A DNA stretch of 64,000 bases from Carpediemonas membranifera BICM (lineage: Eukaryota > Protista > Fornicata). The notes beneath the pieces were generated by a model. The model searched no databases, was not told where the DNA came from, and saw only the letters and a list, made by a program, of their open reading frames with translations. The position numbers were made by a program, and so were the translations under genes. Below are positions 486 through 59,849 of the stretch, piece by piece. Each line of letters begins with the position of its first letter. Position 1 is the stretch's first letter. The stretch spans positions 94,681 to 158,680 of the forward strand of contig JAHDYR010000032.1 in assembly GCA_019828565.1 (NCBI GenBank). The letters run 5' to 3'.

Positions 486-595
486 TGTGGCGCTATACGC
501 GCCCTATTTATATAATTGTGTTTTAGTCAAGCTTAGTCGTGACGACACCCAAGTGTCGAATTAAAATCACTTCTCCCAGCCTTTTTGGTTCCACA
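486..595 (+). repeat. E1 5' LTR (110 bp, partner not seen)
   Basis: TGTGG...CCACA ends, TATA-like TATTTATATAA, hairpin CGACAC-CCAA-GTGTCG, gag ATG 15 nt downstream. Boundaries inferred by analogy with the paired LTRs. Confidence 0.75.
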
Positions 596-605
596 GTAAT
601 TACTG
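594..605. other. Perfect palindrome at E1 primer-binding position: CAGTAATTACTG
   Basis: Read directly; overlaps the terminal CA of the LTR. Confidence 0.9.
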
Positions 606-610
606 CTAGC

Positions 611-1508: not shown

Positions 1509-1649
1509 TGTGGCGACAACAGTATTTACACATAACCTGCGAAGCAGGGGTGAGTGTGCCCGTAGTTATAAATATTGTTGCCCCAGAATAAAATGACCAC
1601 ATCATCTCCAGCAGTTTAAAGACATTCCAGAACTGTGAACAAGAGGCTG

Positions 1650-2128
1650 ATGCCGTGTTCGCTGTGCAGCCGCCCTGGCCACAACAGGACTAGTTGTCCG
1701 TATAGGGCTCTAATCAACCGTGAGGATGGCAGAACAATCCTCTCGGTCATGATGGAGCTCATTGAAGGCAACGATCTTGCCAAAGAGCTGTCCACTGACC
1801 GGGTTGCTTCATGGGCAGTCAAAATCCTCCAAGGTAACTTCACAAACTTTTTAACACTTAGATAGGAACTGCTGTGCTCACAGAGCCGCCAATTGGCCTC
1901 TGTACTCCAGCGACGCCACGTTACTCGTCGTCCGGTCACCAGTCAAGCTCGCAAATCAGCGTGGACTCTTCTACGACCGGCAGTCATGCCCAGTACCTGT
2001 CAATTCCCGTTCCAGTTGATCGCCTTCCTGCAATCTACTCTCTTCTCGCCGAGGCCTTCCGCCCGCCGGACACCGCGGATCATTCTCAGCCTTCAGAAGG
2101 GCTCGACGACAGCATGTTTGCCAATTAA
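1650..2128 (+). CDS. Tn1 second gene: N-terminal zinc-knuckle protein, probable intron 1834-1865
   Basis: MPCSLCSRPGHNRTSC. A 32-nt GT-AG intron joins ORF 1635..1865 to ORF 1874..2128 in frame. Confidence 0.6.
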
Positions 2129-2201
2129 ATGTTATCCTATGTTTCAATGAGCTTTAGTTCGCCATAGCTGAACCCGTTGCTAGCTGACACAAAATGCACA
2201 T

Positions 2202-3170
2202 TTAGAAGAAGCCACAGTGGCGGTACGCTCCAGGCACATCGAAGAACTTGTGGAGCTGATCGAACAACCGGATGATATACTCCGCATGATTCTCGCCAGG
2301 TGGCTTGATGGCGGCCAGTTTCCGCTTGATCGCACCGAAGACAAGCTCAATAGGGTTGAGATGCGGAGCATAACCTGGAAGGAAGATAAATCCGACACCG
2401 TATAGGTCAGACAGCCGCTCATACAGTGTGGTATCTGTTGTTCGGTGACTCCTGGCGTTGTCTAGGACAAGCACCTTGTGCTGTCCGGCGATGAGGCTGA
2501 GCGTCTTGTGTAACACAGGCATAAAGTCCTCCGCCTTGTAGGTCCCAGTAGTGAGCGCTCGGTGTAGAATGCCCTCGTAGCCGAGTACGGCGCAGACAGA
2601 GATTCTCTTACCGTGAGTTCCCCCGCTAGTTTTGACGACGTGCTGTCCAGCCGGGAACCAGGAATACCGTCGGCTGTCATGTGGATCAAAGCTAGTCTCG
2701 TCTAGAAAGACCAGATCGGTCATTGCGTGCCTGGCACGCACGTATACGGCGTAGTTCGCCCAGAACTCCGCCTCGCGGATGGGAGAACACTCCTTCCAAC
2801 GCTTGTCTCCGAGCTTGTAGCTGTATCCAAGCTTCTTGAGAGCCAGCCTAACCGTCTCCGAGGATATTGATGTCGTCGTTGCGAGTTCCAGCTCTTTCTT
2901 AATCGCAGCAACTGTTACGACGTCATCTTGCTCCACGTGACGCATCATGATTGTCTGCAGGATTCTTCCGTCCCGTTCGAACTTTGTTATACGCTTCTTC
3001 CTCTCCTTCTTCTCTGTAGCTCCTTCTCTGGCCTTTCTGTGGGCCTTGATGATTCTACGGACTGTAGAGATGGATATGGCATGCTCTAAATGTTCCACGA
3101 TCTTTGGGGCACTAACACCGTGTTCATGGAACAGTATTACTGCCGAACGGGTCTCTACAGGGCTTGTCAT
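2202..3170 (-). CDS. DDE transposase, IS630/Tc1 type (DD37E)
   Basis: VFLDETSF, LVLDNARSH, P.YAPHLNPIE motifs and N-terminal HTH-like segments. Start codon may be 3192. Confidence 0.93.
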   Translation of the reverse strand: MTSPVETRSAVILFHEHGVSAPKIVEHLEHAISISTVRRIIKAHRKAREGATEKKERKKRITKFERDGRILQTIMMRHVEQDDVVTVAAIKKELELATTTSISSETVRLALKKLGYSYKLGDKRWKECSPIREAEFWANYAVYVRARHAMTDLVFLDETSFDPHDSRRYSWFPAGQHVVKTSGGTHGKRISVCAVLGYEGILHRALTTGTYKAEDFMPVLHKTLSLIAGQHKVLVLDNARSHRTTDTTLYERLSDLYGVGFIFLPGYAPHLNPIELVFGAIKRKLAAIKPPGENHAEYIIRLFDQLHKFFDVPGAYRHCGFF

Positions 3171-3642
3171 CCTCGTTTGAATTTTGACCATGACTCCTGA
3201 CTTTGATGTGGTCATTTTATTCTGGGGCAACAATAGCAATAATAATAACTGAGGCACTGACACTACCCCCCTCGAGCTGTAAGTGGGGCGTATGAATGAT
3301 GGTGCCGAAGATATGTTTTGATGTCATCAAATCTTTCGGTCAGATCTCGAGGATATTCTCCACGATATTCGCCAGGAGTCTGGGTTCGAGTCCCGGGATG
3401 GTCACTTTTGTCGAACAGCGGATCAATTGATGAGCGAGTTGTTCGTGATGACGGTATGATGTCCAGAATGAGCCTGGTGTGTTCGAAACGCGAAGGATAC
3501 TGTTAGAAAGTCCTTCTTCCCCCCCTTTTCCTGCTATCGGTTCTCGATGAGGGAATGCATGATGTTCCTGTTCGAACTGCGTTCGTTCGGATGAATGGTT
3601 GTACAATAAGCAACATCAACATCAGATTAGGATGGGCTGATG

Positions 3643-6600
3643 TTAAAGTCGCTTTTCCAGCTTTGAGCGCTCGTCGGGCGGTAGCGTCAACAAGTAACTG
3701 TCTAATGCGACGAGCTGGCGGTTCTCTGCATCTAGAGGTTCCCACGTAGCCTCTGAGCGTTCGAATCCTGCCCAGAGGATCTTGATCAGGCCTGGTTCCT
3801 TCCTCAGGTCGTGATCCAGGATGGCTTCGACGACAAGTTCGTCGTGATCCAGGGCCGCCATTTTGAGGGCCGCCTCTGGGCTGACGGGCGCTGCGATCAT
3901 GCGCTCCCCGTGGATGTGGACCACCTTCTTCGTAATGAGGTCCTTCAGTCGGTAGACGTTGGGGTCTTCGCCACGACCCAGGACCTTAAGTGGTCCCCGG
4001 AGGAAGGGTGAGAGCTTCTGGGGCTTCCTGCTCGGGATGATAAACGCGAACTCGTGCGGCCTCCACCTGTGGGTAGTCTTGAAGTGATCTCCCCGGCGCT
4101 TAGCCGCGTTGTACTCCTCCACAGCATGCTTGCTCAGTGCGCGGATGCGGCCGAGGGCCTCGATGTGACTGGCGAGAGCTGTAGATGCGCGATCGGGGTC
4201 GGTGTAGCTGCGTGGGGTCTTCAAGTGTCGAGGGCTGATGCCCAGTAAGGCCTCGAGGGGTGATATTCCCCCAAGAGTGCGATGTGGAGCGGAGTTGACG
4301 AGGAATTGGGCCATATAAAGCCATCGTTGCCATTCGTTGGACTCTGCTTCCATCATGAGTTTGCGTAGAGCGCGCACGGCCGTGCCATTCGCTCGCTCAA
4401 CTATACCCGAGCTCTGTGGATGGTAGGCTGTAGCAATGTGGTGCTTGAGGGTCAATTCACTCGTAAGCTTCTCCATAAGCTTGTTGCGGTACTGGGATCC
4501 TCCATCGGTGTGGATCTCCTGAGGAATGCCGAAGCGGCCAGCGAATGCGAGTAGGGCCTGTGCGGCTGAGTCTGCCGACGTGTCCCGGACTGGAACTAGG
4601 TCGACGTACTTGGTAAAGGAGTCAATGATGGTGATGATATATCGATTGCCCCTAGTGGATTCGGGCAGGGGCCCGATCGTGTCCAGCTGGACTGTCTCGA
4701 ACGGCTCTACCCTCTGCGTGCTATGCCACGCGGTCTGGCGCGCTTGGATCTGTCGAGTCTTCAGACATGCCGGACAGGTCCGAACGAAGGCGTCGATGTA
4801 GGGGTCAATGGTCTCGCGTTGAGCTGGCGTTGCCAGCCTGCGGATGATTCTGGCTGATGGGTGGCCGGCGGATCCTCCATGAAGGGTCCGGAGGATGGCG
4901 CGGGCGTCTTCTGGTATGTCGTCAGTGGTCAGGAAGCAGCAGCGACTAAGAGCGTCTGCTACAGCGTTGTCCTCCCCTGCCACATGTGATATCTCCGCGG
5001 GGAACTGCTGGAGGGTGATCCTCCAGCGCATTACCTTCGGTGAGCAGTCCGAGCGCTTCATGAGGTAGACGATATTGCGATGGTCCGTGTGGACGTGTAG
5101 GTCCGTGGCCATGGTGAACAGGGGCTGCATGTCTGATCTGGTGAGTGCACTAAGGATACCATACAGTTCCTTATCATAGGTGCACCAGCGGCGTTGCACA
5201 TCAGTTAGTCTCTTGGAGAATAACGTGACGGGCTGATGTTGGCCGTCCGCAGCGATCTGGTATAGAATACCGCCGACCGCGTTGTCGGACGCGTCTGTAT
5301 AGAGATGCCAGGGTAGACCCGGGTCCGGCTGGGTGAGGGTGATGGCCTCCGCTGTGGCCTCCTTGAGGCTCTGGAGGGCCTGTTCTTGTGGATCACCCCA
5401 CTCCTTGGCCTTGATTGCGTCATAGAGCGGGCCAAGAAGCTCCTGTGCGCGCGGAAGGTGCTCAGCGATGTAATTGAACATGCCAGCGATGCGTCGCATG
5501 TCCTTGACAGAGGTGGGAGATGTGATGTCGTTGAGGGCCTTGGCTCTCTCGGGGTCCACGCTGCGACCTTGCTCCGAGATGTCGAAGCCGACGACCTTGA
5601 CCTTACGGGAGGCGAACTTGCACTTCGCGAGGTTAAGTCTCAAGTCATGGCGATCGAGTAGCACTAAGGTGTGCTCTAGCGTCTGGAGGAATTCCTCCTG
5701 TGTCTTTGCGTGGATGAGGATGTCATCAATGTAGACCATAACACCCTTGTGAAGCACGGGTGCGAGGACTCCTTGCATGACTCTTTGGAAGTGAGACGGC
5801 GCATTTGCTAGGCCGAATGGCACCCGCACGAACTCGTCATACGCGTCTGGGGTGATCATAGCTGTCTTGCGGACGTCGTCCGGGTGGACTGGGACTTGAT
5901 GATACCCGGACGTGAGGTCCAGCGCCGCGAAGAAGCGTGAGCCGGATGCTTCCCGTACAAACGACTTCAAGTCGGGGAGGGGGAAGTGGTCCTTGACTGT
6001 GATCCTATTGAGAGCTGTATAGTCAATACACAGTCTGATGGCGCCGGATGCCTTGTCTACGACGACAATGGGAGAGGCAAACGGTCCCTGTGAGGCCCGT
6101 GTGATACCTGCCGATCGCAGGCGCTGCAGCTCTTCTCTGACTTGCTCACGGCGTCTGGGATTGAGGCGGCGGGGCTTGGCTTGCACGAGGTGCTGTTCGT
6201 CCACTAGCGGGATGCGCATGGCGGGCACCTTGGCTCCTCCAGGCGCCAGGCCGTCAAAAACGTGAGGGTGCTGCTCCAATATCGCTGTGATCGGTTGCTT
6301 AAGCTCCTCGATCTCAATGTTGGGCTGTACGTTGTCGGCCAGCAGTAATTCTTCTGCTGGTCTGAAAGGAATATCGTCCCCTTCGTCTGCTGCGGTTTCT
6401 TTCACGAGCTTAACAAAAAGGCCATCGGAAGTGAGGCATCCGAGGCTTCTCAGAATATCGCAGCCTATGAGGATCAGGGGTTTTTTCCCTGGTATGATGT
6501 CGAGGTTGGCAGTGAAGCGGGTCTCGTGGCCAGTTAGGGCCACTCGGAGGTCCGCGGAGGTCCGGCCATTAGCGGTGGCCACTGACTGGTCTGCCAGTAA

Positions 6601-7670: not shown

Positions 7671-7681
7671 GAGTCTGTACT

Positions 7682-7693
7682 AGAATCGATTCT
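7682..7693. other. Perfect palindrome at E2 primer-binding position: AGAATCGATTCT
   Basis: Read directly; overlaps the last LTR base. Confidence 0.92.
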
Positions 7694-7785
7694 GTGGCGA
7701 CAACAGTATTTACACATAACCTGCGAAGCAGGGGTGAGTGTGCCCGTAGTTATAAATAGCAATAATAATAACTGAGGCACTGACA
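7693..7785 (-). repeat. E2 5' LTR (93 bp)
   Basis: TG...CA ends, duplicated at 1509-3262. Confidence 0.95.
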
Positions 7786-7789
7786 CAAG

Positions 7790-9324: not shown

Positions 9325-9456
9325 TGTCGCAGGCGCAGCCGGCGCAGCCCGACTCATGACGACCTTAGACTGCGCGAGTCGTGGAGTCACACAGGGTGAC
9401 TCCACGTGAGTCACTTCATCAGGGAATAAACCTTTATGCACTCAGAGCTCACACCA

Positions 9457-9472
9457 CAGATGATATCATCTG
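9457..9472. other. Perfect palindrome at E3 primer-binding position: CAGATGATATCATCTG
   Basis: Read directly; 16 bp, overlaps the terminal CA. Confidence 0.93.
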
Positions 9473-12400: not shown

Positions 12401-14132
12401 TGTGGAAGCCATATCTAGCAGGGACGCAGTTCGTCATCCAGACGGACCACGCAAACCTGCGCTTCACTGAGAGATCAGCCTCTGAAAAGATCACCGGAGG
12501 ATGGAACTCCAGCAACACGATTTCATCATAGAATACATCCCAGGCAAGCTTAACGACGTAGCAGACTGCCTCTCGAGGGCATTCCGCCTCCAACGGGTAA
12601 GGAAGCCACCACAGCGTCTAATGGACGACGAATTCGTCTCCTTCGGGGAATCCGCGGACGCAGACGAGGAACAGGAGACAGAAGAGACGCCTACGAGGGC
12701 ACAGACGCGGAAGACGGCGACGAACAAGCGCTGGACGACGAGGCGTCGAACATCATCCAGGACGCGGCCCGTCCAACCGCAGCGACGCTCGAGGAGACCC
12801 TGGCCCAGGCGCACGGCATCGAGACGGGGCACCAAGGAGTCAACGCGACCATACGCCTCATGAAAGACGCCGGCCACTCATGGCCGGGGATGCGAGCCGC
12901 AGTCGTCGACTTCATCCTCCGGTGCCCAGTATGCCAAAAGAACATGGCCCGAGGAAACATCAAGGTCCGGCAGGGTAAGATCCCCCGCGACACACCATTC
13001 GCACGGGTTGCGATCGATACTGTCAAGGTCACGCCGACATCCCGCTCCGGCCACAAGTACATCATGGTGATGGTGGATCACGCCACACGCTACACCGAGA
13101 TATACTCGACAACCAACAAGACAGCCGAGGACGCCGCGGCAGCCTTGCTCCACTGGATCGGACACCACGGACCCATGGAGACCCTCCACAGCGACCAGGG
13201 CACAGAGTTCAAAAACAGAGTGGTCGCAGCCCTACTGAAGCCGCTCGACGCGTCACATCACACAACCTTCAGCTATCATCCACAGGCAAATGGGATTAAC
13301 GAACGAACGAACCAGACCGTGGTGAAGCTTCTCAGAAGAGTTTGCAGCGACTGGGGCACATGGGAGGATTGGCCGATAGCACTGCCCATCATACAACGCC
13401 AAGTCAACACAAGCTACCACAGGTCCATAGGAACGACCCCGGACCAGGCGGCGCACGGCATAACGTGGAGACCGACGAACGCACTCCAGCTCATCGGTAT
13501 ACCGACGACGCTCGAGACGGAAGACCTCGACTCACTCAACGAAGAGATCCGACAGCTGATGCTGAAGAAGACCGCGATGATCGCCGAGAGAGAGGAAGGA
13601 AGAGGACGAGACCGAGGACGCTGAAACGATCGAGACAGGCGACTATGTGCTCCTGCTTCCGCCCCACGGCGACGGAAAGATTCGGAACATCTGGAAGGGA
13701 CCTTTCCAAGTCAAGGAGCCACACGGGCCCTTCGGATTCACCATATCCGACTTGACAGACCCGCAGAGAGAGCTGACCGTCCACCGCGAGCGAATCCGCA
13801 AGTTCCACGCTGGACCGCTTTCAGTCGAAGACCTGGTGCAGCTCGCAGCCACCGACGGCAACGAACGGCTGATTGACTCCATCCAAGACCACCGCACGAC
13901 TCCCGAGGGACGTCGCGAGTTCCAGGTACGCTGGTTCGGACTCGCCGACGGTGAGGAGACCTGGGAGGACTTCGACACCCTCCGGGACACCCAGCCACTC
14001 GCGGACTACCTTGAGGCTCATCCTGAGTCGGTCGTGGGGAGGGCATCTGTCGCAGGCGCAGCCGGCGCAGCCCGACTCATGACGACCTTAGACTGCGCGA
14101 GTCGTGGAGTCACACAGGGTGACTCCACGTGA
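9496..14132 (+). CDS. gag-pol: E3 Gag-Pol (Gag CCHC, PR, RT, RNase H, IN, chromodomain), frameshifts near 12500, 12700-12860 and 13620
   Basis: CFACGQPGHKATKC, FCDSGC, LDLRRGYNQ, YIDD, TDASN, CPVCQ, SDQGTEF, WKGPF, FQVRWFG...TWE. Confidence 0.92.
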
Positions 14133-14185
14133 GTCACTTCATCAGGGAATAAACCTTTATGCACTCAGAGCTCACACCACAAAGG

Positions 14186-20800: not shown

Positions 20801-22788
20801 CTTCGAGGGTGACTGCTGGGTCTACCGCTCGTCAAGAAGGTTATCAGCCTCCTCCATAGCTCTGTCTCCTAGTAGAGATATCATGTGGCGACGTGACGAC
20901 ATGAGTTAGATACGATATGAGTACTCTGCAGCATGACATGACGGATGATCTCCGGGTCTGCCCGAAGGTACCATTGATGACTAAGTGTTAGGGTGCCAGA
21001 GGCTGCTCGCCTCTATTGGCCTGAAGGTGTTGTACTGAGAGGATGGGCGCATCGCTGGAGGACGGGCCGACATGTGTTCGAGCTGCAACATGCTCGCGAT
21101 ACCCGTGAGTTGCTCGTCACGGGATGAGGTGATAAAATACGACCATACTAGACTGGTCGTGGTTTCGGTACAAGTCTCACAGAGGAAGGGACCCGTGAAA
21201 CTACTATCTAAACTCGTTGAAGAGCTGCTATGCGCGGTAACGCTGCCCCTCCGCGGCTCTGAAGTACTTTGTGTTGTCGCCGCGTTGTTGTCTGATGACT
21301 GTTGGTCTCGTGTCTACTAAATTGACTTCAAGCAAGGATGCCGGTCATGATAAGTGGAAGCTAAGTAATTACCTTACCTGAGTTTGGCGGGTAGCACAGC
21401 TAGCCTTGACAAAAGTGCGAGCCATTGTTGCTCAAATGGAGATGCTCGCGCCATGGGGTGAACGATGGCAAGCGCGATACAGTTGACAGCAGATGGGGTG
21501 TCTGCCCAGGCTGTCGCGTACTGAGGATGTGGATGAGCAGCGGTCGAGCTTATCGTTGCTCTATGACGCTGGTTGCCCCTGACAGGGAATTGCGGAGACG
21601 GTGGCGTGCTAGCTCTATTGGTTCATGCCGTGTTGCTGTACGTGGAAGGGACCTGCAAGCTGGCGAGTTCGCACATGTTCGGGGATAACTGGAGAGCAAA
21701 CCTTGAAGCTGCTCAATACGGGTGCTGTTTCAGCACTGTGTGGATAGAAGGATATAACTGGCCGTCTAGGACCCACTGCTAGCAGTTACGTGCTCCACAT
21801 GCTCTGCTGAGCATTTGTTAGGAAGGTATACATGGCCTCATGTAGACATATAAATAGTGTGGATCGCTCCCACGACTGTAGGAACCGAGCTTGGTGTCCC
21901 CAGATGGGTCGTTACCTCTTTCGGTTTTTCATCGTCGATGATGGTAGTTGCCTGTCTGGCTTGGGCCATTGGCCCTGTGCCACTCTTGCTCATGGTCTGC
22001 TGGATGACCCGAATGATGTATGACTTGCTCTGGGCGCATGTGGCCAAGCTGCTACTCTCTAGGTAGCTCTGGATGATGGTTGGGGACGATGATTCTGGAG
22101 GTCTACGTTGGTCAAAGTCGTGCGTGGGTCTGTCAGTGAGTCTACTGGGGTCACTGCCCCTTCTTGGCTTCTTCTCGCACTGTCTCGGGGTGTTCGATTT
22201 GGCTGGAAGTGGAAGTGGCTGGCTCCTCGGCGTGGTTTCGGTTTGTTTTGCCTTTTGGCGGCTTTGGTGGTGCTTATTCCTGGTGCTATCTGCACTGTAT
22301 CGGCTTGTGCTTGGCCTGGCCACTGGTCTCGTTGCTGGTCTCGGTCGATTGCCCTGAAGGAGCTTGATTGGCGCTCCAGAGCTGGTATTGCGGTGCTGTA
22401 TCGTTTGTTGGAGCTTATTGAAGCTTGGTTACTGGTATTGGCCTGTTGTTTGCTTGTATGCTATAGTGCATTGGTGGAAGTTGATGGTCTTGTTGAACTA
22501 AACGCTCTAGACTTGTTGTTGCTTGCGAATTTCAGTTGAACTGTCGACACCGCGGAGACATTTGCATTGCGCTAACGGAAGAAATTGGTTCTGGTGAAAA
22601 TGTCAATTGATGTTGCTTATATTGATTCTCCTGCGCCAGGACCGTTGAGCTCATCTCCTCCGGAAGAAATGATATCATTGTGGTCAGTCCTGGACACAAG
22701 GGAACCAATAAAGACTTTAGAGAGAATACTGCCATATCCTGCACCAAATGTGCAGGATAATACCTGTTGTGACCTGAGTCACACCACA
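17888..22788 (-). mobile_element. E4: LTR retrotransposon with intact LTRs but an indel-riddled gag-pol interior
   Basis: Identical 110-bp LTRs at 17888-17997 and 22679-22788, TSD CTTG (17884-17887, 22789-22792), PPT GGAGGGGCAG. Only scraps of pol-like coding inside. Confidence 0.88.
22668..22679. other. Perfect palindrome at E4 primer-binding position: AATGATATCATT
   Basis: Read directly; overlaps the last LTR base. Confidence 0.92.
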
Positions 22789-22792
22789 CTTG

Positions 22793-24721: not shown

Positions 24722-24934
24722 GAAGGACTGCGATGTCTGAGGATTCTGGGACCACAGCCCCGCCCCCTCGCGGGCACTCTGGGGCTCGCGCTCGACTCGG
24801 GAATTCTGTGAAGTCTGGAAACAACAAGTGTGAAGTGTTTAAGGGGTATACCTCCTACTGGTGATAATGGCTCTAACTGCGTCTACATAATCATGTAAAT
24901 ACCACACTACCCCTCCTCCATCAGAGCCATGCTT

Positions 24935-29026: not shown

Positions 29027-29036
29027 AGTAATTACT
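29027..29036. other. Perfect palindrome at E5 primer-binding position: AGTAATTACT
   Basis: Read directly; 10 bp, overlaps the last LTR base. Confidence 0.9.
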
Positions 29037-29438
29037 GAAGTCTGGAAACAACAAGTGTGAAGTGTTTAAGGGGTATACCTCCTACTGGTGATAATGGCTC
29101 TAACTGCGTCTACATAATCATGTAAATACCACATTCTGGCCCCGAGCATTTTTAGGCATTTCGCCATCGCTCATACAGAAAGTTCTGGTACGTTGGGCTG
29201 ATCCGCCCCATTCTTACACAGTGCCCGAAAAAGGGGTTTTCAAGCCCCAATTCGGCTTCGTTAGCGAGTTCTGGCTCTTTTTGTTCTGCGCTGTACCGAA
29301 AGTTAACCAACATCATAAGCACTGCTCCACGGACGGTAGAAGTCTCGTGAACTGTGTTTGAGATATAAATATTGTGAATAGTCCGTCATGGGGATCACTA
29401 TGGGCACTTCCATTCGTCATTTGGGAAAAGTGCAGGAT

Positions 29439-35109: not shown

Positions 35110-35114
35110 AGGTA

Positions 35115-35126
35115 AGTACTAGTACT
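35115..35126. other. Perfect palindrome at E6 primer-binding position: AGTACTAGTACT
   Basis: Read directly; overlaps the last LTR base. Confidence 0.9.
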
Positions 35127-35209
35127 GTGGTTTGGAAGAGAAAGAGTTTACGAGTAAAAAGAGGTTTGGACCCTCCCAGGGATATTGGTAGATATTAATA
35201 TTGACTACA

Positions 35210-38852: not shown

Positions 38853-38993
38853 GATAAACTGCACATTTGCAAATAAGCTCTCTATTAACTCATTGACCGT
38901 TGTATCAGGGGCTGCTCGACACTGGTCTGGGCGTTCGGAGTCCTCGAGTCACAGTCGGCGAGTCGCGAAATTTCTTCAAATTCTGGCGAAGCG

Positions 38994-44871: not shown

Positions 44872-44915
44872 AGGCTGGGCCCCTGAAGAAGTCGGCGTGT
44901 GCGTCCGTGATCATG

Positions 44916-45632: not shown

Positions 45633-45667
45633 GATAAATCGTAAATTCATTAAGATGAAGTGGCGAT

Positions 45668-46730
45668 ATGTCAAGTTTAGAGCAAAAGAAGGTTGAGAGG
45701 AAGCTCAAGAAGCTCAGAGAGAAGGTTGAGAATAAGACTTGCTTTGATTGCACGCAGCCAGCGCCGACCTACGTCTGCATGGACTTCGGAACTTTCGTTT
45801 GCACCAAATGCTCTGGAATTCAGTACGTTGCCGCCGTTATTCTCATCTAGCCGTGAAAAGAACCGTGTTGTGAAGTCTGTTTCGATGGCACTTTTCACAA
45901 TGGAGGAAGTTGATGCCATCACTGGCAATGGCGCCGCCGAACAGAAATGGCTCAAGGCCTGGACGCCCGAGGACCACAAGAAGCCCTCACCCGCCAACCC
46001 GGGCCAGGTACGGGAGTTCATGAGGCTGAAGTACGAGGTCAAGCGCTGGGCCCAAGCCGCCCCGACACAACCGACGCCCCAGCCCGCCAAACCCGTCCCT
46101 CTGAAGCCCACGGTTCATGACGTCCCCAAGCTGGAGCAGAGCGACACCAAGCAGGACCTGATGAACCTGTTCGGCGATTCCAAGCCCGCTGCCGCCCCTG
46201 CGCCTGAGGACCCATTTGGTACCTTCTTCGACCAGAAGCCCGCCCAGCCACAGTCCCAGGCCCAGGCCCAGACTCCTCAGAACGATCCGTTCGACGCCTT
46301 CGCCAAGCCAGCTTCCGTCGCCCCTGCTCGCACCATCGCCCCAGCACCAGCACCAGCCCCGGCACCCAAGCCCGTGGACCCTCTCGCCGACCTCTTCGGC
46401 CCGCCAGTCACCCACACACCCGCCCAGCAGCCCCATCCCCAGCAATGTCATGCCCCGCCCAGACAGACGGACCCCTTCGCCTCTGAGTTCACCCAACCCG
46501 CGGCCCCCGCTCCGGCCCCGGCCGCACACGCCCATAGTTCTACACTCGACGACCTGTTCGCCACCCCCAGCCCAGCCCAGCCGGTGCACCAGCCGGCCGC
46601 CCAGCACAACCCCTTCGCCGGCCAGGAGTTTACCTTTGATAACTCCCCCGCACCTGCGGCCTCTCAAGCTAGGGCTACCAACCCTTTCGACGACCTCTCT
46701 GATGCCGTCAACAGCATGATGTTCCACTGA
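45668..46730 (+). CDS. ArfGAP-domain protein (AGFG-like) with DPF/NPF motifs (intron 45823-45850)
   Basis: NKTCFDC...PTYVC.DFGTFVC..CSGIHRE after splicing a 28-nt intron; KYE.KRW. Confidence 0.92.
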
Positions 46731-46830
46731 GTCTGGAAGCGTGTCTTGGTGTCACATCAAGGCACGGGTAATTGGGTGCTAATGTAAATTACGTTCTTCT
46801 GCGATGATAGTTGGGCAATCAACATCATTC

Positions 46831-46865
46831 CTTAGCTTACCTTACCTTACCTTACCTTACCTTAG
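46831..46865. repeat. Pentanucleotide tandem repeat (CTTAC)5 flanked by CTTAG
   Basis: Read directly. Confidence 0.85.
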
Positions 46866-47021
46866 CTGCCCGTCTGCCGTCAAAGTTGAAAGGCCGACTC
46901 CCGGCCAGGCTCTTGCGGGCTGGGCAAACACTGATAGCAACTGTGTGTTCCGCCCTTGAGGAGGAACCCAGCAGCGAGAGAGTCAATTTTGCAAGATCGA
47001 ATCGAATCTGGAGTCGAGAGC

Positions 47022-48160
47022 ATGGCCCCAGAGCGTTTGAAGCAACTAGTGGCACAAAAGGGCTTTGTGTGGATATATGATTACTCTCTCGGCTTCATAT
47101 ACCTTGCGAGCGCGACAATTATGCCGCTCTACAACTATCTCTGCTACAGAGGCCACCACCATGCCGTACGCCCGTTCCCCTATCCTGTTACGTTCACAGC
47201 GATCCAGCTGTTTGCAACTTGCGCGTTCATGACCGTTGCCAACATCGCACTGCACTTTCTCCGCCCTCATCGCCATGGATCATCCTGGGTCCTCGGCAGG
47301 GGCCTCCTAGTCAAGCTGTATGCCACCTCCGCCCCCTCCACTGCTCACACAGCTCCACACTCTTCATGCCAGCCGCTATTTTCGCTGGGAACATGTCCAT
47401 GATGAACATGGGTCTGATGAAGACGTCCGTCTCGGTACACGTCCTCCTCCGCGGCTCAGAGATCGTATGGATCATCCTCATGGCCTGGATACTACAGAAG
47501 GAGAGGCCTAGGGTGCTCACGGTGGCGTGTATCGCCCTGCTCTTTGTCGGCACAGCCCTGGTCTCCTTGCAGCTCCTTCTATCAAACGGCCTTGGCTCGC
47601 TCGGCCTCGGGGCTCTCCTCATGAACATGCTGCCGACCATGATTGCCCCTGCTTACTCAGTCCTCCTCAAATGGACGATCCAGCGACTCAAGCTCGAGGG
47701 CTATCAGATGCATCCGACTGAGACAACCGCACTCGTCATTGGACTAACCGCAACCGTCATGATATGCCCCACGCCATGGCTCGAGCCCGGGGCGGCAGTG
47801 GAGCTGCTTCACATCCACCTTCCCCTCTTCATTGTCCTATGCTTTGGATGTGTCTTAACCTGCACATTCAAATTTGTAATGATCGCGATGCTCGACCGCC
47901 AACACGTGATAACTGTAGGCATAGTAGGCCAGATGAAGATCATCCCCCAGGTAATCATGGATGTGCTCTTCTTCAAGAACTACCCCTGCACCATCCTCAT
48001 GGTCCTCGGCACTGGCGTCAACGTCGTCGGTGCGCTGAGCTATGCAGTGCTGGAGTGGCTTGGGCTGACGTACCGTGGGAATGAGCCGGTGCATAAGCCG
48101 GCGAGCACTGCGGGTGACCTTGACCCGCTGCTGGGGGACGAGGGCAGCCTGGACGGGTAG
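47022..48160 (+). CDS. Triose-phosphate / nucleotide-sugar transporter family (DMT superfamily) protein (intron 47318-47352)
   Basis: FPYPVTFT.IQL, N.GL...SVS....LR, LQKE.P, T.GIVGQMK; multi-pass hydrophobic. A 35-nt intron joins the two ORFs. Confidence 0.85.
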
Positions 48161-48467
48161 GGCGTGTGGGCATGTGGTAAACTACAGCGGTATCAGCTGT
48201 TGCGGATGGTCCAGGTTCCACCATCAAGGCCCGGCGGGTGCCCCAAATGCCCAGGTTGGCGGCTTTGCCTCGATCTTTGACATGCCTGCGGACGTCAATG
48301 TCCTACCTACTCTTGCCTCACGGACGACTGGGCAGCGCGGATTCTGGTCATATCGCTGTTGGGGTGGAAGTAACGCTTGAGTATTAGTTTTTATAAATTT
48401 TCATTCTGTAGTGGCCATATTTAAGCTCCAATAAATTCCCAATCACACCGTGGTGATCACAAGTGCG

Positions 48468-51400
48468 ATGGATAGGAGGAGACGTGTGTTCTCAATCGGT
48501 GAAAGAGAAGCGATCAGAGCTGCTGGAGAACGACTAGGGCCAACTGCAGCGGCGAAAGAGTTCGATCTGCCGCTTCAAACTGTCAAGGGCATTATATACA
48601 GGAACAGAGACGGAAAACAACGAGGACCAGCAAGGAACGAAGGGCTTTATGAACAGGTACGCGAGACTATGTTGAACAAACGCGGAAATCTCAAGCTCCT
48701 TCATCTACAGTACAACGCCGAGATGGGAAGCTCAGTGCCGAGGACGACATTCGCCCGCTGCCTCGCTGAGGCTCGCCTCTCTGTCCGCTGTGGGTCCAAA
48801 GGAGCCAAGTGCATGCGACGAGAAGACTGGGTTGAGGTAGCCAGGATGAGAGCCAAGTACATCACTCACGTTGGGCAGGTTCTAGTGCACGACGAGAGCA
48901 TGTTCACCTGGAGGGGCATCAGAGACATCACTGACAAGGTGGTGGCTCCAACTGGGACGAACCAGGTGACAATCCCGCTAGATCGACTGGTAATCCCGAC
49001 AGTGACGCTTACTGCGCTCATCTCCGTCGAGGGATTTGTCTTTGGTGATGTCTACGTTGGCACGAAGGGCGCTATCAACGGAGAACGATTCAAGAGGATC
49101 CTGCAGAGCGCTAGTGACGTTATTTATCCATATCCTGGCAAGCATTCGGTCATTATCACCGATAACGCGAGCTTTCATGACCGCGATGCAATGCAAGAGA
49201 TTGTTGATGGCTTTGGCTGCATGGTTATATGGACTCCGCCCAATGGATCCACTGTTAGTCCCATCGAAGAAGCGTTCGGGCACCTTAAGGCAACAGTGAA
49301 CGAAGAGGTTGCAAAGGCGATTATTGGGGTGTGGTGGGCACAGAACAACAACAATCAATGCGAAGTGTTTAAATAGGGTCGAACCCTAGTGGTAAATATG
49401 GCCTAAATATATACGGGTCAGGTGACCACTACACTGCCCCCATGACTTCCACCATAACATTGTGGATTGTCATCAAATTGAAAGATATCGATCAAATATA
49501 AAAGATCTTGTCGTCCCCAGACCTAATCTAAACTCCTTTTGCGATCTTCGGAAATTCGGTCCTTTTTGTCAGATTTGGCACAAGATGAGTCATTGCGTCT
49601 AAGTTGCCAGTGACGACGGATTGGTACGTAACTATGATCTTCTTCACGCTCTATACTTCATTCTTCTCCATTTCTGTCTCTTTCGCGCTTCTGTCTCGCT
49701 TCTTCAGTTTCATCGCTTCTCATTAGTTCGTTTCGGCGAGTTCACGCTCTCTCTCTCTCTTAGGTGATCATTTGCGTTCATTATCATTATCCTCGTGATT
49801 GCAATCACTTTTCCTCTTCTTCTCTTCTTTCTTCATCAAACAACATCAACAGCACACGTCTCAGGGGGATTTACCGGCGTGGTGTCCCTTCCTGAGTGAT
49901 GGAAGCTTCAATCTCGGATGCTCATTAATGTATGCGTCCAGGGCAGCTAATCCATCGATTTCGCGGCTGTAATCGGTCCATGTGCCTTCGTCGTCATCGT
50001 AACCCTCCCACAAGAGGGAGGAACTGAAGGTTGCCCGCTTGTCGGCGATGGTCAGCAACCTTCCTAACCACGTACTCTCCTTCGTTGCGGGCTGCCCAGT
50101 GTTTGAGCTCAGCGTCAGTGTAGCTGCCCTCGAACTGGTAAAGCTCAGAGGCATGTACTGTCAGGCGGTGGTCAGTGGTGAGGTCTTGAACGACGTAGGT
50201 GTTGGGGCGGTCGGGATTGGTGGAGATGACCCGGACCGGGCCCCGGGGTACGATGCCTATGGCAGTTTTGCGCTGGATCATGGCGGCGGATCCAAGGAGA
50301 TGACTCGCTGGATGGCTCTGCGCTGGAGTTTGGCCACCGACAGCGCGTTGTCTGCTCTGTAAACAGCTTAGGGTGGTACGGAAGTGGTCAACGGTGAGGG
50401 AAGGTTGTCTAGTCGGTTCGTGGACGTCCCTGGCGTATAGGACTTCGTACGGCGACAGGTTGGAGGCGGTTAGAGGTGAGTTGTTGATTATATTCGTGAT
50501 TCGTGGTAAGGCGTCCTGTTGTGGGTCCTACCCAAAGTTACACAGATTTACGTTATATTTAATAGTCAAGGAGTTTCTCCTCGACACCCTTGTGTCGAGT
50601 CTTCTCCTCAGTAAAAGTTCAACACCCATTGAACCACAGTACTAGTACTACCAAAACATATGGGTACGGAAACTTACAGAAGCCTGAAGAAGAATCCGCC
50701 TCTCCTGAAGAAGTCCTCCATGGACGCTCTTTTGGACTTTGCGGATAACCTCCACGATCATCGCGCCTTAGGCGGCCGCGATGATGTTATTGACCTCATC
50801 GAGCCTAGCATAGCAGAGCTAGCAGGCCTTAACGACGACGAAGAGGTTGAAGACACTCCTCTCCTGCTCTCCGCGAAGCTCCGTAAGAAACGTCGTGTCG
50901 CAGCCCAAGATGAACGAGTCCTCAAGCGCCTCGGTGCTGCCCTTCGACCTTCTCGCCCGAGCATGCGTCTACAGCTCTTCCGAGTCCCCGCCAAGTCCTT
51001 CGAGCCTGATGAGGTTGCTCGAGTGAACCGCCGATTCAATCTGCTCTTGAAGCTCGTTCAACCCGAAGATCCCGAGGACGTCTTGAAGGAGACGTACAGC
51101 CGCTGCTTCAAGTTCCCCAACAACAGTCGCATCATGTATCGAGTCAGAGAATCAACGGAGCGCAAGGATCTCAAGGACGCAATGGCTGATGTCCTCGTCA
51201 TGTCACGCGACCTCAAGGAGTCCAAGGAGATGATCGCTTCCTTCGGCGCTGCGGGGGTCTCCGACTCACAGCGTACCAACACCACGCCCTCCCATACACG
51301 GCACACGGGGAGCGGTCCGAAGAACCCTCATCGACGCGAGCCTGACCGCACGAACGTAGCCCCCTCAAAAGGCAAGCCGATCGACAAGCCCAAGCACGAG

Positions 51401-54400: not shown

Positions 54401-57400
54401 GCTTCCGTCGATGAGTGGCATGTCGAGCGCATCTCACGCTCTAGAGGCTCGGGCCCCAAGTCAAGGCGCGAGTACCTCGTACACTGGGTCGGATTCGAGG
54501 ATTCAGAGGCTTCATTCGAACCTTATTCGCACGTCAAAGATTTGGAAGCCCTCGATACATATTTGAAGTCTGACCAAGCCAAGCGTGACGGTCTGTAAAA
54601 CTTCTCAACATCGAAGCTGTATCCTCGAGGAACAAACGATTTATTCAGAGCTAGATTCCTCGTCTTCCGTCTCCTCCGTGTCCGTCAGCTCGACCAACCA
54701 AGTCGGGTCAGCGTGGCGCTCAAGGGCGTTCTCAGCCAAGTACTCTCGCACACACCGGACAAGGCAGAGATCAGCGTTGAGGGACACGATGCTGAGTCCC
54801 GAGTATCCGTCATACTGCAGGATCAACACAAAAGACCCGGGACCACAAGTCGTCTTCAGATACTCGTGACGGACTACGCACGTGACAGTGTAGTAGCGGT
54901 CCGGATCAGAGACCTGAAGCGGCTCCCAGTGAGCCTCATCGCCAATGGCGGGCAGGTAGCCGTCGTGGCACAAGCGGCTGACCAGGGTTGCCCAGAAGTC
55001 GTTGGGAGCCGGGATGCGCCGGCTGATGCCGTAGACAGCGACACGGAAGTAGTCCGGTGCGAGGACGAGGACCAACAGGCGGTTAAGATATCCGCGCGCT
55101 GTAGTGTCCGACTTGACCCCGCCGGCAGTCCGCACAGCCGCCACGAGAGCTGCAGAGTAGTGACCATTACCGGGCGAAGACCCACCCAGCGTGATGTCGC
55201 GGCCCCGGATCGCGGCCGACACGATGTCGCCATCGGTCAAGCGCTTCCTGCCGAGCTTGAGGTGGGCCCTCACACCGGCAAGCGCGACCTGGCAGTGAGC
55301 CACGAGAGCCAAGACCTGCTGGGTCAGCTTCACGTCCTGCACTACGGCTGCGTCGTTCAGACGACCTTGCTCAATAGCGTCAAAGATTCGCTGGAGCGGC
55401 AGCTCGATGGAGTTGGTGTAACCTTCCAGGCGTCGGGCAACCTCGGCCTTGATGTCGTGGGGCATCAGAGTCGTCATCGTCAGGGTGCGAGTGATGCGTT
55501 CTGAGGCTTGCACGCGGTGACTATATAACCTCACGGTTGATGTTTGTTACTTACAGATTGTCGGTGACCATGCGCTTGCGTCCACGATACTTCTGAGCGC
55601 GAAGGGAACGACAAACGGACGTATGGGCAACAATAAGTGGCCTAGCCAGATCGTCATCACCAAGTTCGGTGATTTTGGCACGAATTTCCTTCAGAACGGC
55701 CTCTACGGCTGTGTTGTCCGACATCAAATGAGTTGACGGCGACATATCCTGCACATTTCTCGGAAACGGTCGAAGGAACAACTAACAAGGTCATCTTAGT
55801 CTTCAAGCATGCATTTATTGTCGGTAATAAGGCATTAGGAGCTTCCTAGTGCTCCTTCCGGTCAGTTTGATGTTGTTATTCAAGTACAGTTGGACGCAGA
55901 AAATTAGAAGCCTCAGAACTCCTCAACGGAGCCGAATTGGAGCTTCTAAGTACGTTTTTCGGCGTCTGTGTGATCATGAGCGATAAGGGCTCAGCATTGG
56001 CAGTGTTTGCTAGAGCAATCGTTCTTGGCCTTCGAATTACATGGAATGGCATATAAAACGTATAAGGTTTGTGAAGACGGCCTAGGAAGGCCGTGGAGGG
56101 GCAGTGGTAAGCCTCTCCGTCACGTTTCACCATTTTTGAAACAGAGCTCACATAGCGGTACCGCAGTTAGATCATGATACCATCATTTTGATTTCGTTCA
56201 GCTAGATGCGAAAGCACTCAGGCCATGGGGTTGCCAGCCCTATGAGTCACCGTTGGCGGTCGGGTGGCACCGTCCAGGCCTTTGGTGAAATGCTGACGTC
56301 AAGTCTCTCTGTCATGCCTATACCAGGCATGGAGGGGCAGTGTTGTGGGTCCTACCCAAAGTTACACAGATTTACGTTATATTTAATAGTCAAGGAGTTT
56401 CTCCTCGACACCCTTGTGTCGAGTCTTCTCCTCAGTAAAAGTTCAACACCCATTGAACCACAGGCGTACCGATCTCGTGTCTTATACCGTGGTCTTGGCA
56501 AAATTCTCTGATGGTTCTGTTATGGTACTGTGAGCCACCATCGGTAATCAAGCATGTCGGGGAGCCATAGTGTTTCATCCATGTCGATAAAGCCGAACGT
56601 GCAGATACAGCGTCCGTGCTCTTCGTGGGGTAGGCTTGGGTGAGTCTAGTAAACGTGTCGATAATCACAACCGCGTAGCGGTGTTGCCCGGGCAGTGAGA
56701 GGGGACCAATGGTGTCGGCCTCCACTACTTCGAAGGGTCGGCTGCCGGTCATGGGATGGGTCGCTTGGGGAAACGGTGAAAGCTTGAGGCGTGTCAACTG
56801 GCAAACAGGGCACTGTCTTATCCAGGCAGTAACGTCCCGGCGCATGCCAGGCCAGCCCTTGTCGGCGGCTATGATGCGTTTGCAGGTGGCATCACGGCCA
56901 AGGTGACCAGCATCTCCGCCATGTGCTTCTTGGAAGGATTCCCGATGCGCCTCGGGTGGAGGGGAAGGTTCGACGGAGGTCTCGTCCAGGTGAACGAGGC
57001 GGGACAGGGTGTCCGCTACAGAGTTGTCGGAACCTGGAACGTGTACGATGTCGAATGAGTACTCAGACAGCGCGAGGCTCCACCTAATCACCTTGGAATT
57101 CAAGGAACGGTCCATGTAGACCAAGTTACGGTGATCTAGATGAGCTGTGAAGTCTCGTCCAGCGAGATAGCGTCTGAACTTGGTAGTACCGAAGTACAGA
57201 GCGTAGCACTCTTTCTCTATCGTAGACCAACGGCGCTGTTGGGGCGTGAGCGTCTTGGCGAAGAACGCGATGGGCTTAAACTCCGCGTTCATCAGCACGC
57301 CACCAATGCCGTAGTCTGATGCGTCCGTAAAAATGTGGAGATGTTCGTCGGGACAGGGGTGGACCAGCGTGCGCTGCAGTAGAAGCTCTCGCTTAATCTG

Positions 57401-59849
57401 CTCAAACGCGTCATGTTGTCGGTCGCCCCAAACGAACTTTTCGGCGGCTCGGGTGAGCTCGGTGATGGGTTCAGTCATATCGACGTAACGCTCAATGAGT
57501 GCTCGAAAGTAGTTCGCGAACCCGAGCAAGGCTCGGGCGTCCGTCAGACTAGTCGGCTCCTTGAGATCATGGATGGCCTCCAGACGGTCGGGGGAGATCC
57601 GCTTACCGTCCTTGTCTACTCGCCAGCCCAAATAGTCGATGGAAGTCGCTCCAATGACCGTCTTGGAAGGATTAAGCTTCAGACCGGCCGCGTGGATGCG
57701 AGCTAACACGTCCTCCAGATTCTTCAGGAACTCGTCACGGTTCGCTCCAAAGACGACAATGTCATCTATGTAAGCGAGACACTGAGTATAAAGGGATTGA
57801 CCCAGAATGTGTTCCATGGCTTTCTGGCAGTGGATGGGAGCATTACGAAGCCCAAAGGGCATCCGCTTATACTGGTATTTCTTCCCACCAGCCACAAAAG
57901 CGGTATACTTGCGCGAGTCCTGGTTGATTATGATCTGGTGGAACGCTTTGGATAGGTCCAGCGTGGCGTAAAACTGTTGGCCTTGTAGGTGATCAATCAA
58001 GTCGTCGATGAGGGGTAGGGGATGCTCCTCGGCCTGGGTGATAAGGTTCAGCCGTCTAAAGTCGAGGCAGAGGCGACGCTTGTTGCCTCTCTTCTTTGCC
58101 ATGACGATGGGGTTATTGAAGGCTGAGTCCGAAGGCTCGATGACGTCCAGAGCAAGCAGCTCCTTAACCTGGCGATTAACCTCATCTTCCACCTGCTTGC
58201 CGTGACGATATGGGAAGCAGTTGATGACCTGGTCATTCTTGGTCTTCAGGGAGAATGCTGGGAGCTTGGACGGGCTGGAAATGTCCCCGAATAGGCCTGG
58301 GAACTTTTCAACAATCCTTTGGCTGGCTTCTGCAAACTGCACATATTCTGGGGCTGTTCTCTCGACCTCGTTTTCGAACATCTCGTCGTCGTCGTTCTGG
58401 TTTGACGGAGTCGGGTCAGGCGAGGGTATCTCGATCAGTCCCGCGCTGCGCAGGAGTGGGAACCCGATGATCGCATCGTAATGGTCGAGTGAGATGAGGA
58501 TAAACTTTGTGCGTACAGAGAGGGGTCTACCTGTCACAGAAGGGTACAGGACAGTATCGTAGGCCACATGGGAGGTGTTGATTAGTTGGCCTGACATGAG
58601 GCGAACCCTGTGGCACTCAGGAATGGGGGTGAGGCCCAGGGACTTCGCTTTCGCCTCATGGAGGAAGTTGGCGGTGGCACCTGTGTCGTAGAGGGCGCGC
58701 ACGGAGGATCCGTGCAGTCTGACTTTGAAGACTGGGCGGTGTTCTGCTTGATCGTCTTCGGGCGTTTCGACTGACATTGCGTCTAAGTACTCTTCAACCG
58801 TAGCAGCGAGGAAATCGTGCGCGTAGGACCTATCATTTACGTCCTTCTTCCGCGACTTGTGGGATTCCTTCTCGGCTTGCTGCATCTTCTTGGCTTGGGA
58901 GAGAGCGGCGCGCATGGTGTTGGCGATGGAGGACTTATCCTCAAAGGTCTTACAGCGTTCACGTAAGCGATCATTGCGGATGCCCTTCAGGAATTTGGCT
59001 ACGAGGCTCGACTGCTTCGGGGGTACAGAGGCGCAGTTTTCGAGTGTCCGCTGGTAGATTAACGTGTAGTAGAGCATGGACTCATAAACGTTCTTGCTGG
59101 CGGTGTCAAAGGTAATCGAGTCAAATCGGTCGAGCGCGTCCTGACGGTCGAGGGGTCCGAAGATGTCGTTCACCATTGAGATAAATCTTTGTTGAAGTCG
59201 TTAGGGGTCTCGGGTGTGTGAACGGGTAGATGCTCGGACTCGTCGGAGACCGAACTATCAGTGTCAGACTCGGTGTCGTCATCAGTGTCAGACTCAGGGG
59301 GCGCGAGGAACAGAAGGGGGTCCCTAGGCGCAGCGCAGGGTTGCTGTGTGACCTCACGGGCACGAGTAATAAGGTCTTCGAGGTCCGGGCATTCGAGGAA
59401 CATGATCTTCAAAACCGTCGCTGCGACGTAATCGAAGATCAGAGGCTTGGAAGCGGCGTTTCGTGCGTAATGGGCAATGAAGGCTTCCCGGAATGAATAC
59501 CATGCCTTAGGCTTCGTACTAGTGAGATAGGGTGCCAGGAAAGTTGATAGTTGTTCTACGTTCATCTAGATAGTAATATTACTGTGGTGGGCACAGAACA
59601 ACAACAATCAATGCGAAGTGTTTAAATAGGGTCGAACCCTAGTGGTAAATATGGCCTAAATATATACGGGTCAGGTGACCACTACATGGGGGCAAAATAC
59701 GCTGGACTGCTGAGCAAGTGAGCGAAGTCATCCTCAGGCACGCATTCTCACAGCCTGCGCATCGTTTTCCTCGCTTGTTCATGCGTGCTGGCATTTCTGC
59801 CACGACTGACTGGTCCTACTGGGATAGATCAGCATATGGCAAGCTATAA
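48468..59849 (+). CDS. Tn2 DD34E transposase, split by E8 (48468-49329 plus 59692-59849)
   Basis: VHDESMF, ITDNASFH, PP....SPIEE.FG.LK. The frame continues across TSD TGGGG (..AIIG/GKIRW..GKL*). Confidence 0.9.
49861..50516 (-). CDS. pol: E8 integrase C-terminal part and chromodomain (frameshifted)
   Basis: LPRITNIINNSP...LSPYEVLY, RGPVRV, EYVVRKVADHR, LWEGYDDDEGTW. Confidence 0.85.
50638..50649. other. Perfect palindrome at E7 primer-binding position: AGTACTAGTACT
   Basis: Read directly; overlaps the last LTR base. Confidence 0.93.
50660..54598 (+). CDS. gag-pol: E7 Gag-Pol (2x CCHC, PR, RT, RNase H, IN, chromodomain), frameshifts near 52235 and 52900
   Basis: CFNCGKVGHSARRC, FDSGA, LDLSAGYHQ, YIDD, TDASD, SDGGSEF, WRGPM, YLVHWVGFEDSEASFEP. 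Confidence 0.93.
54641..55745 (-). CDS. E7 antisense accessory gene (intron 55521-55554), C-terminal chromodomain-like segment
   Basis: GTAAGT...ATAG 34-nt intron joins ORF 55551..55781 to ORF 54641..55534 in frame; homologous to 29439-30555. Confidence 0.82.
56463..59565 (-). CDS. gag-pol: E8 Gag-Pol 5' part (Gag, PR, RT, RNase H, IN N-terminal half), frameshift near 59175
   Basis: LYDTGA, LDLSKAFHQ, YIDD, TDASD, CPVC, ADTIGP, TDGGSQY. Confidence 0.92.
59572..59583. other. Perfect palindrome at E8 primer-binding position: AGTAATATTACT
   Basis: Read directly; overlaps the last LTR base. Confidence 0.93.

Follow-up and report, generated by a model that had tools for sequence, protein, structure and literature searches.

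Perfect palindromes at the primer-binding position of Ty3/Gypsy retrotransposons in Carpediemonas membranifera: a candidate self-complementary primer-binding site

[quoted passage not shown] The question is raised by a 64,000-nt stretch of the genome of Carpediemonas membranifera BICM (GenBank assembly GCA_019828565.1, contig JAHDYR010000032.1, positions 94,681 to 158,680; hereafter the window), eukaryotic DNA of ~57% G+C, in which eight LTR retrotransposons (E1 to E8) have a short perfect palindrome where the 5′ LTR ends. Among the steps in the replication of retroelements, minus-strand priming is one of few for which just two solutions are thought to exist, a host tRNA or the self-primer of Tf1. 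Judged from the sequences, the likeliest interpretation is that the palindrome is a tRNA-independent, self-complementary PBS.

The preliminary description of the window had placed a perfect palindrome at each of the eight 5′ LTRs. All eight palindromes (10-16 nt) were found exactly at the positions and with the sequences given there, and each starts on the A that closes its 5′ LTR. The LTRs and palindromes are listed below in window coordinates; here and in what follows the arrow (↓) marks an LTR boundary.

486..595, plus strand: 5′ LTR of E1, inferred, 110 bp, TGTGG..CCACA
594..605, plus strand: palindrome of E1, CAGTAATTACTG, at the LTR end; gag ATG 5 nt downstream
7693..7786, minus strand: 5′ LTR of E2; 3′ LTR in two pieces, 3232-3263 and 1509-1574
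7682..7693, minus strand: palindrome of E2, AGAATCGATTCT
9325..9458, plus strand: 5′ LTR of E3, 134 bp; 3′ LTR 14048-14181, 100% identical; target duplication AAGG
9457..9472, plus strand: palindrome of E3, CAGATGATATCATCTG, 16 nt
22679..22788, minus strand: 5′ LTR of E4; 3′ LTR 17888-17997; target duplication CAAG
22668..22679, minus strand: palindrome of E4, AATGATATCATT, retained without an encoded reverse transcriptase (RT)
29036..29133, minus strand: 5′ LTR of E5, 98 bp; 3′ LTR 24809-24906; target duplication CAGAA
29027..29036, minus strand: palindrome of E5, AGTAATTACT, 10 nt
35126..35209, minus strand: 5′ LTR of E6, inferred, about 84 bp
35115..35126, minus strand: palindrome of E6, AGTACTAGTACT
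50517..50638, plus strand: 5′ LTR of E7, 122 bp; 3′ LTR 56341-56462; nested in E8
50638..50649, plus strand: palindrome of E7, AGTACTAGTACT, the same sequence as in E6
59583..59686, minus strand: 5′ LTR of E8, 104 bp; 3′ LTR 49330-49433; target duplication CCCCA
59572..59583, minus strand: palindrome of E8, AGTAATATTACT

Five elements (E3, E4, E5, E7 and E8) have LTR pairs, 98-134 bp long and 100% identical, that fix the LTR end. The E2 end was set by the 3′ LTR, which is split by a Tc1-like insertion, and the ends in E1 and E6 were inferred from the ..CCACA motif, in E6 also from similarity to E7. LTR lengths in the window range from 84 to 134 bp, and all pairs open to comparison are 100% identical. 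The LTRs have TGT..ACA ends and a polypurine tract (..GGAGGGGCAG↓TGT) precedes the 3′ LTR; four of the five intact elements (E3, E4, E5 and E8) are flanked by target duplications of 4-5 bp. E1 is interrupted by the nested insertions of E2 and E3. No matching 3′ LTR was found for E1 or for E6.

The carriers are chromodomain Ty3/Gypsy (Metaviridae, chromovirus-like) retrotransposons. They encode a zinc-knuckle Gag, protease (PR), RT, RNase H and integrase (IN) in the order PR-RT-RNaseH-IN, which, together with the TG..CA LTR ends, the short target duplication and the polypurine tract, supports this assignment. Pfam matches in E2 comprise Asp_protease, RVT_1, RT_RNaseH, rve and Chromo; the sets in E7 and E8 are equivalent, partly split over open reading frames (ORFs). 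RT/RNase H and a zinc knuckle were detected in E3 and E6, RVT_1 and a zinc knuckle in E5, and a C-terminal chromodomain on the integrase in E2 and E7. E4 (17888-22788) is a non-autonomous element of 4.9 kb with identical LTRs, without pol and without any ORF longer than ~200 amino acids; besides the palindrome and the polypurine tract it keeps just the LTRs. It sits inside another retroelement, and an ORF at 22717-24294 gives a weak RVT_1 match.

Perfect palindromes of at least 10 nt number 81 in the window, compared with ~68 in shuffled sequences. There is no large general excess, so the signal lies in the position: chance would put the start of a palindrome of this length right on the closing LTR base at about one junction in 1000. 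The sequences after the 3′ LTRs of the window elements are ordinary and not palindromic, in keeping with the earlier observation that none follows a 3′ LTR.

The preliminary description had suggested scoring the sequences after 5′ LTRs beyond the window. Twenty further pol loci were sampled from the genome assembly (24.24 Mb, 69 contigs). Recognisable LTR pairs were found at 17 of them, and all 17 carry a perfect palindrome of 12-14 nt in the same place, among them AGTGTTAACACT, AGTGAATTCACT, AGTTTTAAAACT, AGTATTAATACT, AGTATCGATACT and AATATCGATATT. In the resulting census of 25 junctions (8 in the window and 17 further ones, a sample of the genome) the perfect palindrome is present at 25. 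The 24-Mb genome contains at least 14 carrier families, and many of the insertions are apparently recent, because their LTR pairs are identical. The final LTR A belongs to the palindrome in every family. An additional C..G pair (CA↓...TG) is present in about a third of the families, compared with 25% by chance, so this pair is not required.

Symmetry is kept while sequence and length vary, as had been noted for the eight window elements: across four host sources, including the relatives described below, we distinguished 18 palindromes of 10-16 nt, about thirteen of them within C. membranifera. All 132 base pairs at the 21 tabulated junctions are of the Watson-Crick type; G-T pairs and spacers are absent. 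The two halves covary, near relatives differing by paired changes (AGT-AAT/ATT-ACT, AGT-GAA/TTC-ACT, AGT-TTT/AAA-ACT). The sites are 57-88% A+T, also in G+C-rich hosts. Strict Watson-Crick pairing without wobble is also a property of classical PBSs, which on the standard model of reverse transcription would come from the plus-strand copy being made on the primer in every cycle.

The preliminary description had argued that sites complementary right through the centre suit an intermolecular duplex better than a looped hairpin. RNA folding predicted no hairpin at 12 of the 21 sites and values of 0 to -5.7 kcal/mol at the other nine, whereas the predicted homodimers of the 21 sites range from -9 to -24 kcal/mol. 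Hairpins of 5-6 bp would be possible at the sites of E3 and locus L001. In every family the central four bases are complementary, although they could not pair in a hairpin. With hairpins weak and the centre always complementary, the argument is sound, and the symmetry pattern fits a predicted intermolecular duplex.

Complements of the kinds used in tRNA priming and in Tf1-type self-priming are lacking, as had been stated for the window. Host tRNA sequences with CCA added were compared with the 24 nt around each junction, random internal 24-mers serving as controls. With the partial set of 28 host tRNAs the best complementarity at the junctions was 6-8 nt (mean 6.6). Control values averaged 6.9 nt and reached 10 nt at most, so the junctions do not exceed chance. 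TGG does not occur from +1 to +8 after the LTR in any of 15 families. Comparison of the 10-nt palindromes of host tRNAs (T-arm, acceptor end) with the element sites gave no match. Within the LTR of the element concerned, the reverse complement of the PBS region was matched over at most 4-6 nt, which is at chance level (shuffle p 0.3-1.0) in each of 15 families. A second, complementary arm downstream, as found in the fungal GalEa elements discussed below, was likewise at chance level (3-4 nt) in 14 of the 15 families; the exception is E3, with a copy of 8 nt at +35. No other conserved sequence was found between the palindrome and gag in the families examined, and the gag ATG often follows the palindrome by 5-30 nt. 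Rfam and ARAGORN scans of the window found nothing.

One tRNA-like feature was detected elsewhere in the elements. In 3 of 14 families examined (E2, the L003 type and L015) an antisense cassette resembling a tRNA 3′ half, with T-arm, 3′ acceptor strand and T-run, lies ~90-120 nt upstream of the 3′ LTR:

window 3375-3408, plus strand: cassette of E2
L003:2833-2875: cassette of the L003-type family
L015:2940-2985: cassette of L015

In the element RNA the cassette complements the T-arm and acceptor strand of a tRNA. CCA is not covered, and the cassette is therefore unable to put a 3′-OH at the U5 edge. Because the other 11 families do not have it, it stands outside the general system. It is possible that the cassette is a Ty3-like 3′ PBS, an RNA polymerase III/TFIIIC site, or captured pieces of a tRNA gene.

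Relatives outside the genome were collected by protein searches and a metagenome search (with an alignment of four sequences), followed by contig look-ups. Seven families in other hosts carry the junction palindrome. Five of these, with the same architecture, are in assembly GCA_002919055.1 (PPCM01 contigs), and the other two are on contigs L086 (47% G+C) and L087 (71% G+C, LTR ~66 bp), from hosts of quite different base composition. The junctions read:

GCA_002919055.1: ..ACCACA↓ATTTCGAAATT
GCA_002919055.1: ..GGCACA↓GAAACGTTTCT
GCA_002919055.1: ..GTCACA↓GTGTACACT
GCA_002919055.1: ..GTAACA↓ATAATATTATTG
GCA_002919055.1: ..CACCACA↓GAATCGATTCT
L086: ..GCTACA↓ATAATTAATTATTG
L087: ..GTCACA↓GATACGTATCT

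The family with ..CACCACA↓GAATCGATTCT is the counterpart of E2. Their pol sequences are ~47% identical and their LTRs barely alignable, and a 24-nt block (CCACA, the palindrome and AGTACAGA) is identical in the two. The counts comprise contigs with a delimited 5′ LTR end: L085, L170 and L171, without a 5′ junction, L097, whose LTR end is undefinable, and L169, in which AATATATATATT follows ..TTCA and the LTR is not delimited, were left out. The Logan contig L083, which starts 30 nt before the LTR end, was considered as a transcript start and rejected as a k=31 assembly break.

The preliminary description had called for placing the RTs on a tree. We built an RT-RNase H tree of 50 sequences by a quick search, without Tf1 and Ty3. 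The palindrome is restricted to one clade: all 18 carriers included sit in a single group (Shimodaira-Hasegawa-like approximate likelihood ratio test, SH-aLRT, 98), which also contains five rows with an unreadable 5′ junction and lies apart from the sampled fungal and fish chromovirus-like sequences. The sister element, L168, has a 1172-bp LTR followed by T and then TGGTGAACG, a tRNA-type site. Outgroup elements from WLWD01 have tRNA-type sites as well (..CCCACA↓TC, then TGGTTGGCAGCGG; ..CCCACA↓AC, then TGGCGGCAG). The pattern in sister and outgroup is ..CA, 1-2 nt and TGG.., and since these ordinary TGG sites were picked up, the procedure is able to recognise tRNA-type sites. L168 also has a Baculo_F-like (env-like) ORF downstream of pol (L168:9543-11369, an ENA contig of 710 kb).

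What could the palindrome do at this position? Where minus-strand synthesis starts determines the U5 end of an LTR, so the bases right after the 5′ LTR are where the primer is located. As the site is self-complementary, its natural partner would be its counterpart on the other genomic RNA of the co-packaged pair. That the palindrome is the minus-strand PBS of a distinct Ty3/Gypsy lineage that has abandoned tRNA priming, with this second site as the primer, is a proposition whose chances we hold to be evenly balanced. A third mode of priming, in which two co-packaged genomic RNAs pair through the self-complementary PBS and one of them is cut to prime, is put forward more tentatively.

Pairing of the RNAs, cleavage and extension are steps that we infer, as follows. 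Two genomic RNAs would form a duplex of 10-16 bp ending exactly at the last U5 nucleotide. A cut in one strand, on the 3′ edge of the duplex or close to it, would give a 3′-OH for extension over U5-R of the other strand. In Tf1 an analogous cut in an RNA duplex is made by the RNase H domain of RT. The last nucleotide of the primer would pair with the final LTR A and be retained after primer removal, or the cut would be made a few nucleotides inside the site; HIV-1 RNase H is known to leave one ribonucleotide behind when the primer is removed. Plus-strand strong-stop synthesis would then copy the primer and rewrite the palindrome in each cycle, which we propose as the reason for the strict symmetry in all families. 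A mutation in one half-site would be copied as its complement into the other, and repair of the heteroduplex could give a new perfect palindrome. Such easy symmetric change through primer copying may account for a rapid and always symmetric diversification into 18 variants.

The fixed position, the covariation of the halves, the central symmetry, the lack of a classical primer site, the palindrome kept in the pol-less E4 and the confinement of the carriers to one clade support the interpretation as a primer site. So does the 24-nt block shared by E2 and its counterpart, unchanged between species while the LTRs diverged. Other points weigh against it. If the primer were long, comprising the whole 5′ leader, plus-strand synthesis would have to stop behind the palindrome, for which the sequence shows no evident means. 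Palindromes are also what dimeric proteins that bind DNA, or sites serving RNA dimerisation alone, would use. The host tRNA set is partial (Rfam search, 63 scored of 497 candidates; ARAGORN, 28 distinct tRNAs with 22 anticodons), and the cassettes in E2, the L003 type and L015 may indicate some tRNA involvement in these families.

The last two points leave room for the main rival, in which the palindrome would serve only as a dimerisation or packaging signal, similar to the dimer initiation site (DIS) of retroviruses, and the primer would be an undetected tRNA, tRNA fragment or other small host RNA. Dimerisation of retroviral genomic RNA is indeed driven by palindromes. We nevertheless consider this explanation unlikely: the offset to the LTR is zero in every family with nothing else conserved before gag, the palindrome has no flanking stem whose loop it could be, a single host RNA could not match 18 differing sites, and no palindrome of the partial host tRNA set matches any of them. 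The remaining explanations are less likely. Intramolecular snap-back, in which the site would fold within one RNA and be cut on its 3′ side so that the leader primes itself, fits the positional evidence equally well, and it could draw on the hairpins possible in E3 and L001 and on the self-priming of Tf1-type elements (PMC4600332). It is made improbable by the 12 of 21 sites without a stable hairpin, by the absence of a spacer or loop in all families and by central four nucleotides that are complementary everywhere though unpairable in a hairpin.

A DNA site in the 5′ untranslated region, bound by a dimeric host transcription factor or element-encoded protein, would explain perfect palindromes, which are typical of dimeric DNA binders, and a location just downstream of the promoter-bearing LTR. 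One protein would then have to read very different sites (18 sequences over four host sources, about thirteen in this genome) of 10-16 nt without a spacer, and the exact register with the last LTR base has no obvious transcriptional meaning; we regard this as more improbable still. Least credible is that the elements use classical or half-tRNA priming and that the palindromes arose by chance or as by-products. Priming by tRNA is the default of LTR elements, and priming by an internal part of a tRNA is known in copia, but there is no TGG, tRNA complementarity is at control level, and 25 perfect palindromes at 25 junctions face an expectation of ~1 in 1000.

Several further features of the elements were recorded. 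Very short LTRs of 55-66 bp, in 100% identical pairs and with no obvious TATA box, occur in apparently intact recent Gypsy elements; to our knowledge they are among the shortest reported:

L011:1865-1919, short LTR
L014:1949-2005, short LTR
L010:1830-1895, short LTR
L012, L013, L019 and L020, also short LTRs
L087, about 4470-4537, short LTR

Several window LTRs (among them 486-595, 50517-50638, 9325-9458 and 22679-22788) contain an A/T-rich TATA-like motif and, ~20-30 nt further on, a strong short hairpin (E1 CGACACCCAAGTGTCG; E7 CGACACCCTTGTGTCG; E3 GGAGTCAC..GTGACTCC; E4 CCTGCAC..GTGCAGG), a possible marker of the 5′ boundary of R. The LTR hairpin of E8 is T-arm-like (AGGGTTCGACCCT). E7 has identical LTRs without a clean 4-5 bp target duplication (50505-50516, 56463-56470); its flanks, ..GGCGTCC↓LTR and LTR↓GGCGTAC.., differ in kind from those of the other four intact elements. 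At the 3′ end of E6 (30250-30460, minus-strand sense) a good polypurine tract (GGTAGGGGCAG↓TGTGCCCGCG..) is followed by sequence that mismatches the element's own 5′ LTR (TGTAGTCAAT..). Recombination in the history of E6 or replacement of its 3′ LTR may be the reason.

The insertion in the E2 3′ LTR is a Tc1/IS630-like DNA transposon of 1.66 kb (1575-3231), with an ORF matching DDE_3 and HTH_Tnp_Tc3_2 (2202-3263, minus strand) and 32-bp inverted ends (1573-1604, 3204-3235). A second DDE_3 ORF (48450-49376) adjoins the E8 3′ LTR. The transposon clusters are separated by host genes (37683-48160, plus strand): arginase-family, CDC20/Fizzy WD40, Mem_trans transporter, ArfGAP-like and EamA/TPT transporter.

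With at least 14 families in one genome and relatives in at least three other host sources, the lineage lends itself well to comparative study of a site whose only pairing partner is itself. If two genomic RNAs do prime each other, genome dimerisation and the start of reverse transcription would be one event. On the practical side, LTR-annotation tools that demand a tRNA-type PBS will overlook such elements or score them wrongly.

How do the palindromic sites compare with known systems? Retroviral DISs and the Ty1 PAL sequences are short perfect palindromes in the 5′ leader through which two genomic RNAs pair. They accompany a tRNA PBS, and the DIS sits in a hairpin loop, whereas in the present elements the PBS position itself is taken by the palindrome, which is maximal, its flanks being unpaired, so that no DIS-type stem-loop is expected. 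Ty3 has a bipartite PBS, of which the 5′ part pairs with the tRNA 3′ end and is complemented by a 3′ PBS. The T-arm/acceptor complement near the 3′ end of E2, the L003 type and L015 recalls the Ty3 3′ PBS, but the Carpediemonas elements do not have the 5′ PBS for the tRNA 3′ end.

Tf1 and the sushi elements are closer in that they are Ty3/Gypsy elements priming without a tRNA. In Tf1 the 11 nt at the start of the mRNA, which lie within the LTR, pair with the PBS, and the element is self-primed (PMC4600332); the same type of self-priming is found in Tf2, Tj1, Maggy, Skippy and others (PMC6934838). The Tf1 PBS, perfectly complementary to its own transcript, is non-palindromic and has its partner inside the LTR, whereas the Carpediemonas sites pair only with themselves.

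The closest likeness was found in another superfamily. The preliminary description named no precedent for a palindrome in place of a PBS; this does not hold, as a partial one exists in the palindromic site that Donnart et al. 2017 (PMC5445492) reported for the fungal GalEa elements, which belong to Ty1/Copia. Directly behind the 5′ LTR of GalEa elements lies a 9-bp site, palindromic once the final LTR A is included (variants of this Conserved Hairpin Site are A↓CTGATCAGT and A↓CTAATTAGT), and the elements have neither a tRNA PBS nor a Tf1-type complement; the authors propose that the site replaces the PBS and find that no described model fits (PMC5445492). A second complementary 9-mer (CHSeq2) always lies 12-41 bp downstream and forms a hairpin with the site (PMC5445492). 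Literature searches for a palindromic PBS in Ty3/Gypsy and for Carpediemonas retrotransposon structure returned nothing beyond this paper and one citing it, on bivalve TRIMs, miniature retrotransposons with terminal repeats (PMC6934838). In the window, ACTGATCAGT at 61445-61454 matches the GalEa motif; it was dismissed, as it lies within a stretch resembling the internal region of E6.

The two groups share a palindrome that includes the final LTR A and lies at the PBS position, here at 21 of 21 tabulated junctions. They differ in most other respects. GalEa elements are Copia elements of Pezizomycotina, and the elements described here, with Gypsy domain order and RT, occur in a metamonad and other microbes. 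In GalEa the sequence hardly varies, 85% of families having one of two variants, whereas the Gypsy lineage has 18, and the second arm, always present in GalEa, is missing from 14 of 15 families here. If priming by the paired genomic RNA is confirmed for the Gypsy lineage, it would offer a mechanism for the palindromic site of GalEa too, and if the same logic holds there, the two superfamilies would have arrived at it by convergent evolution.

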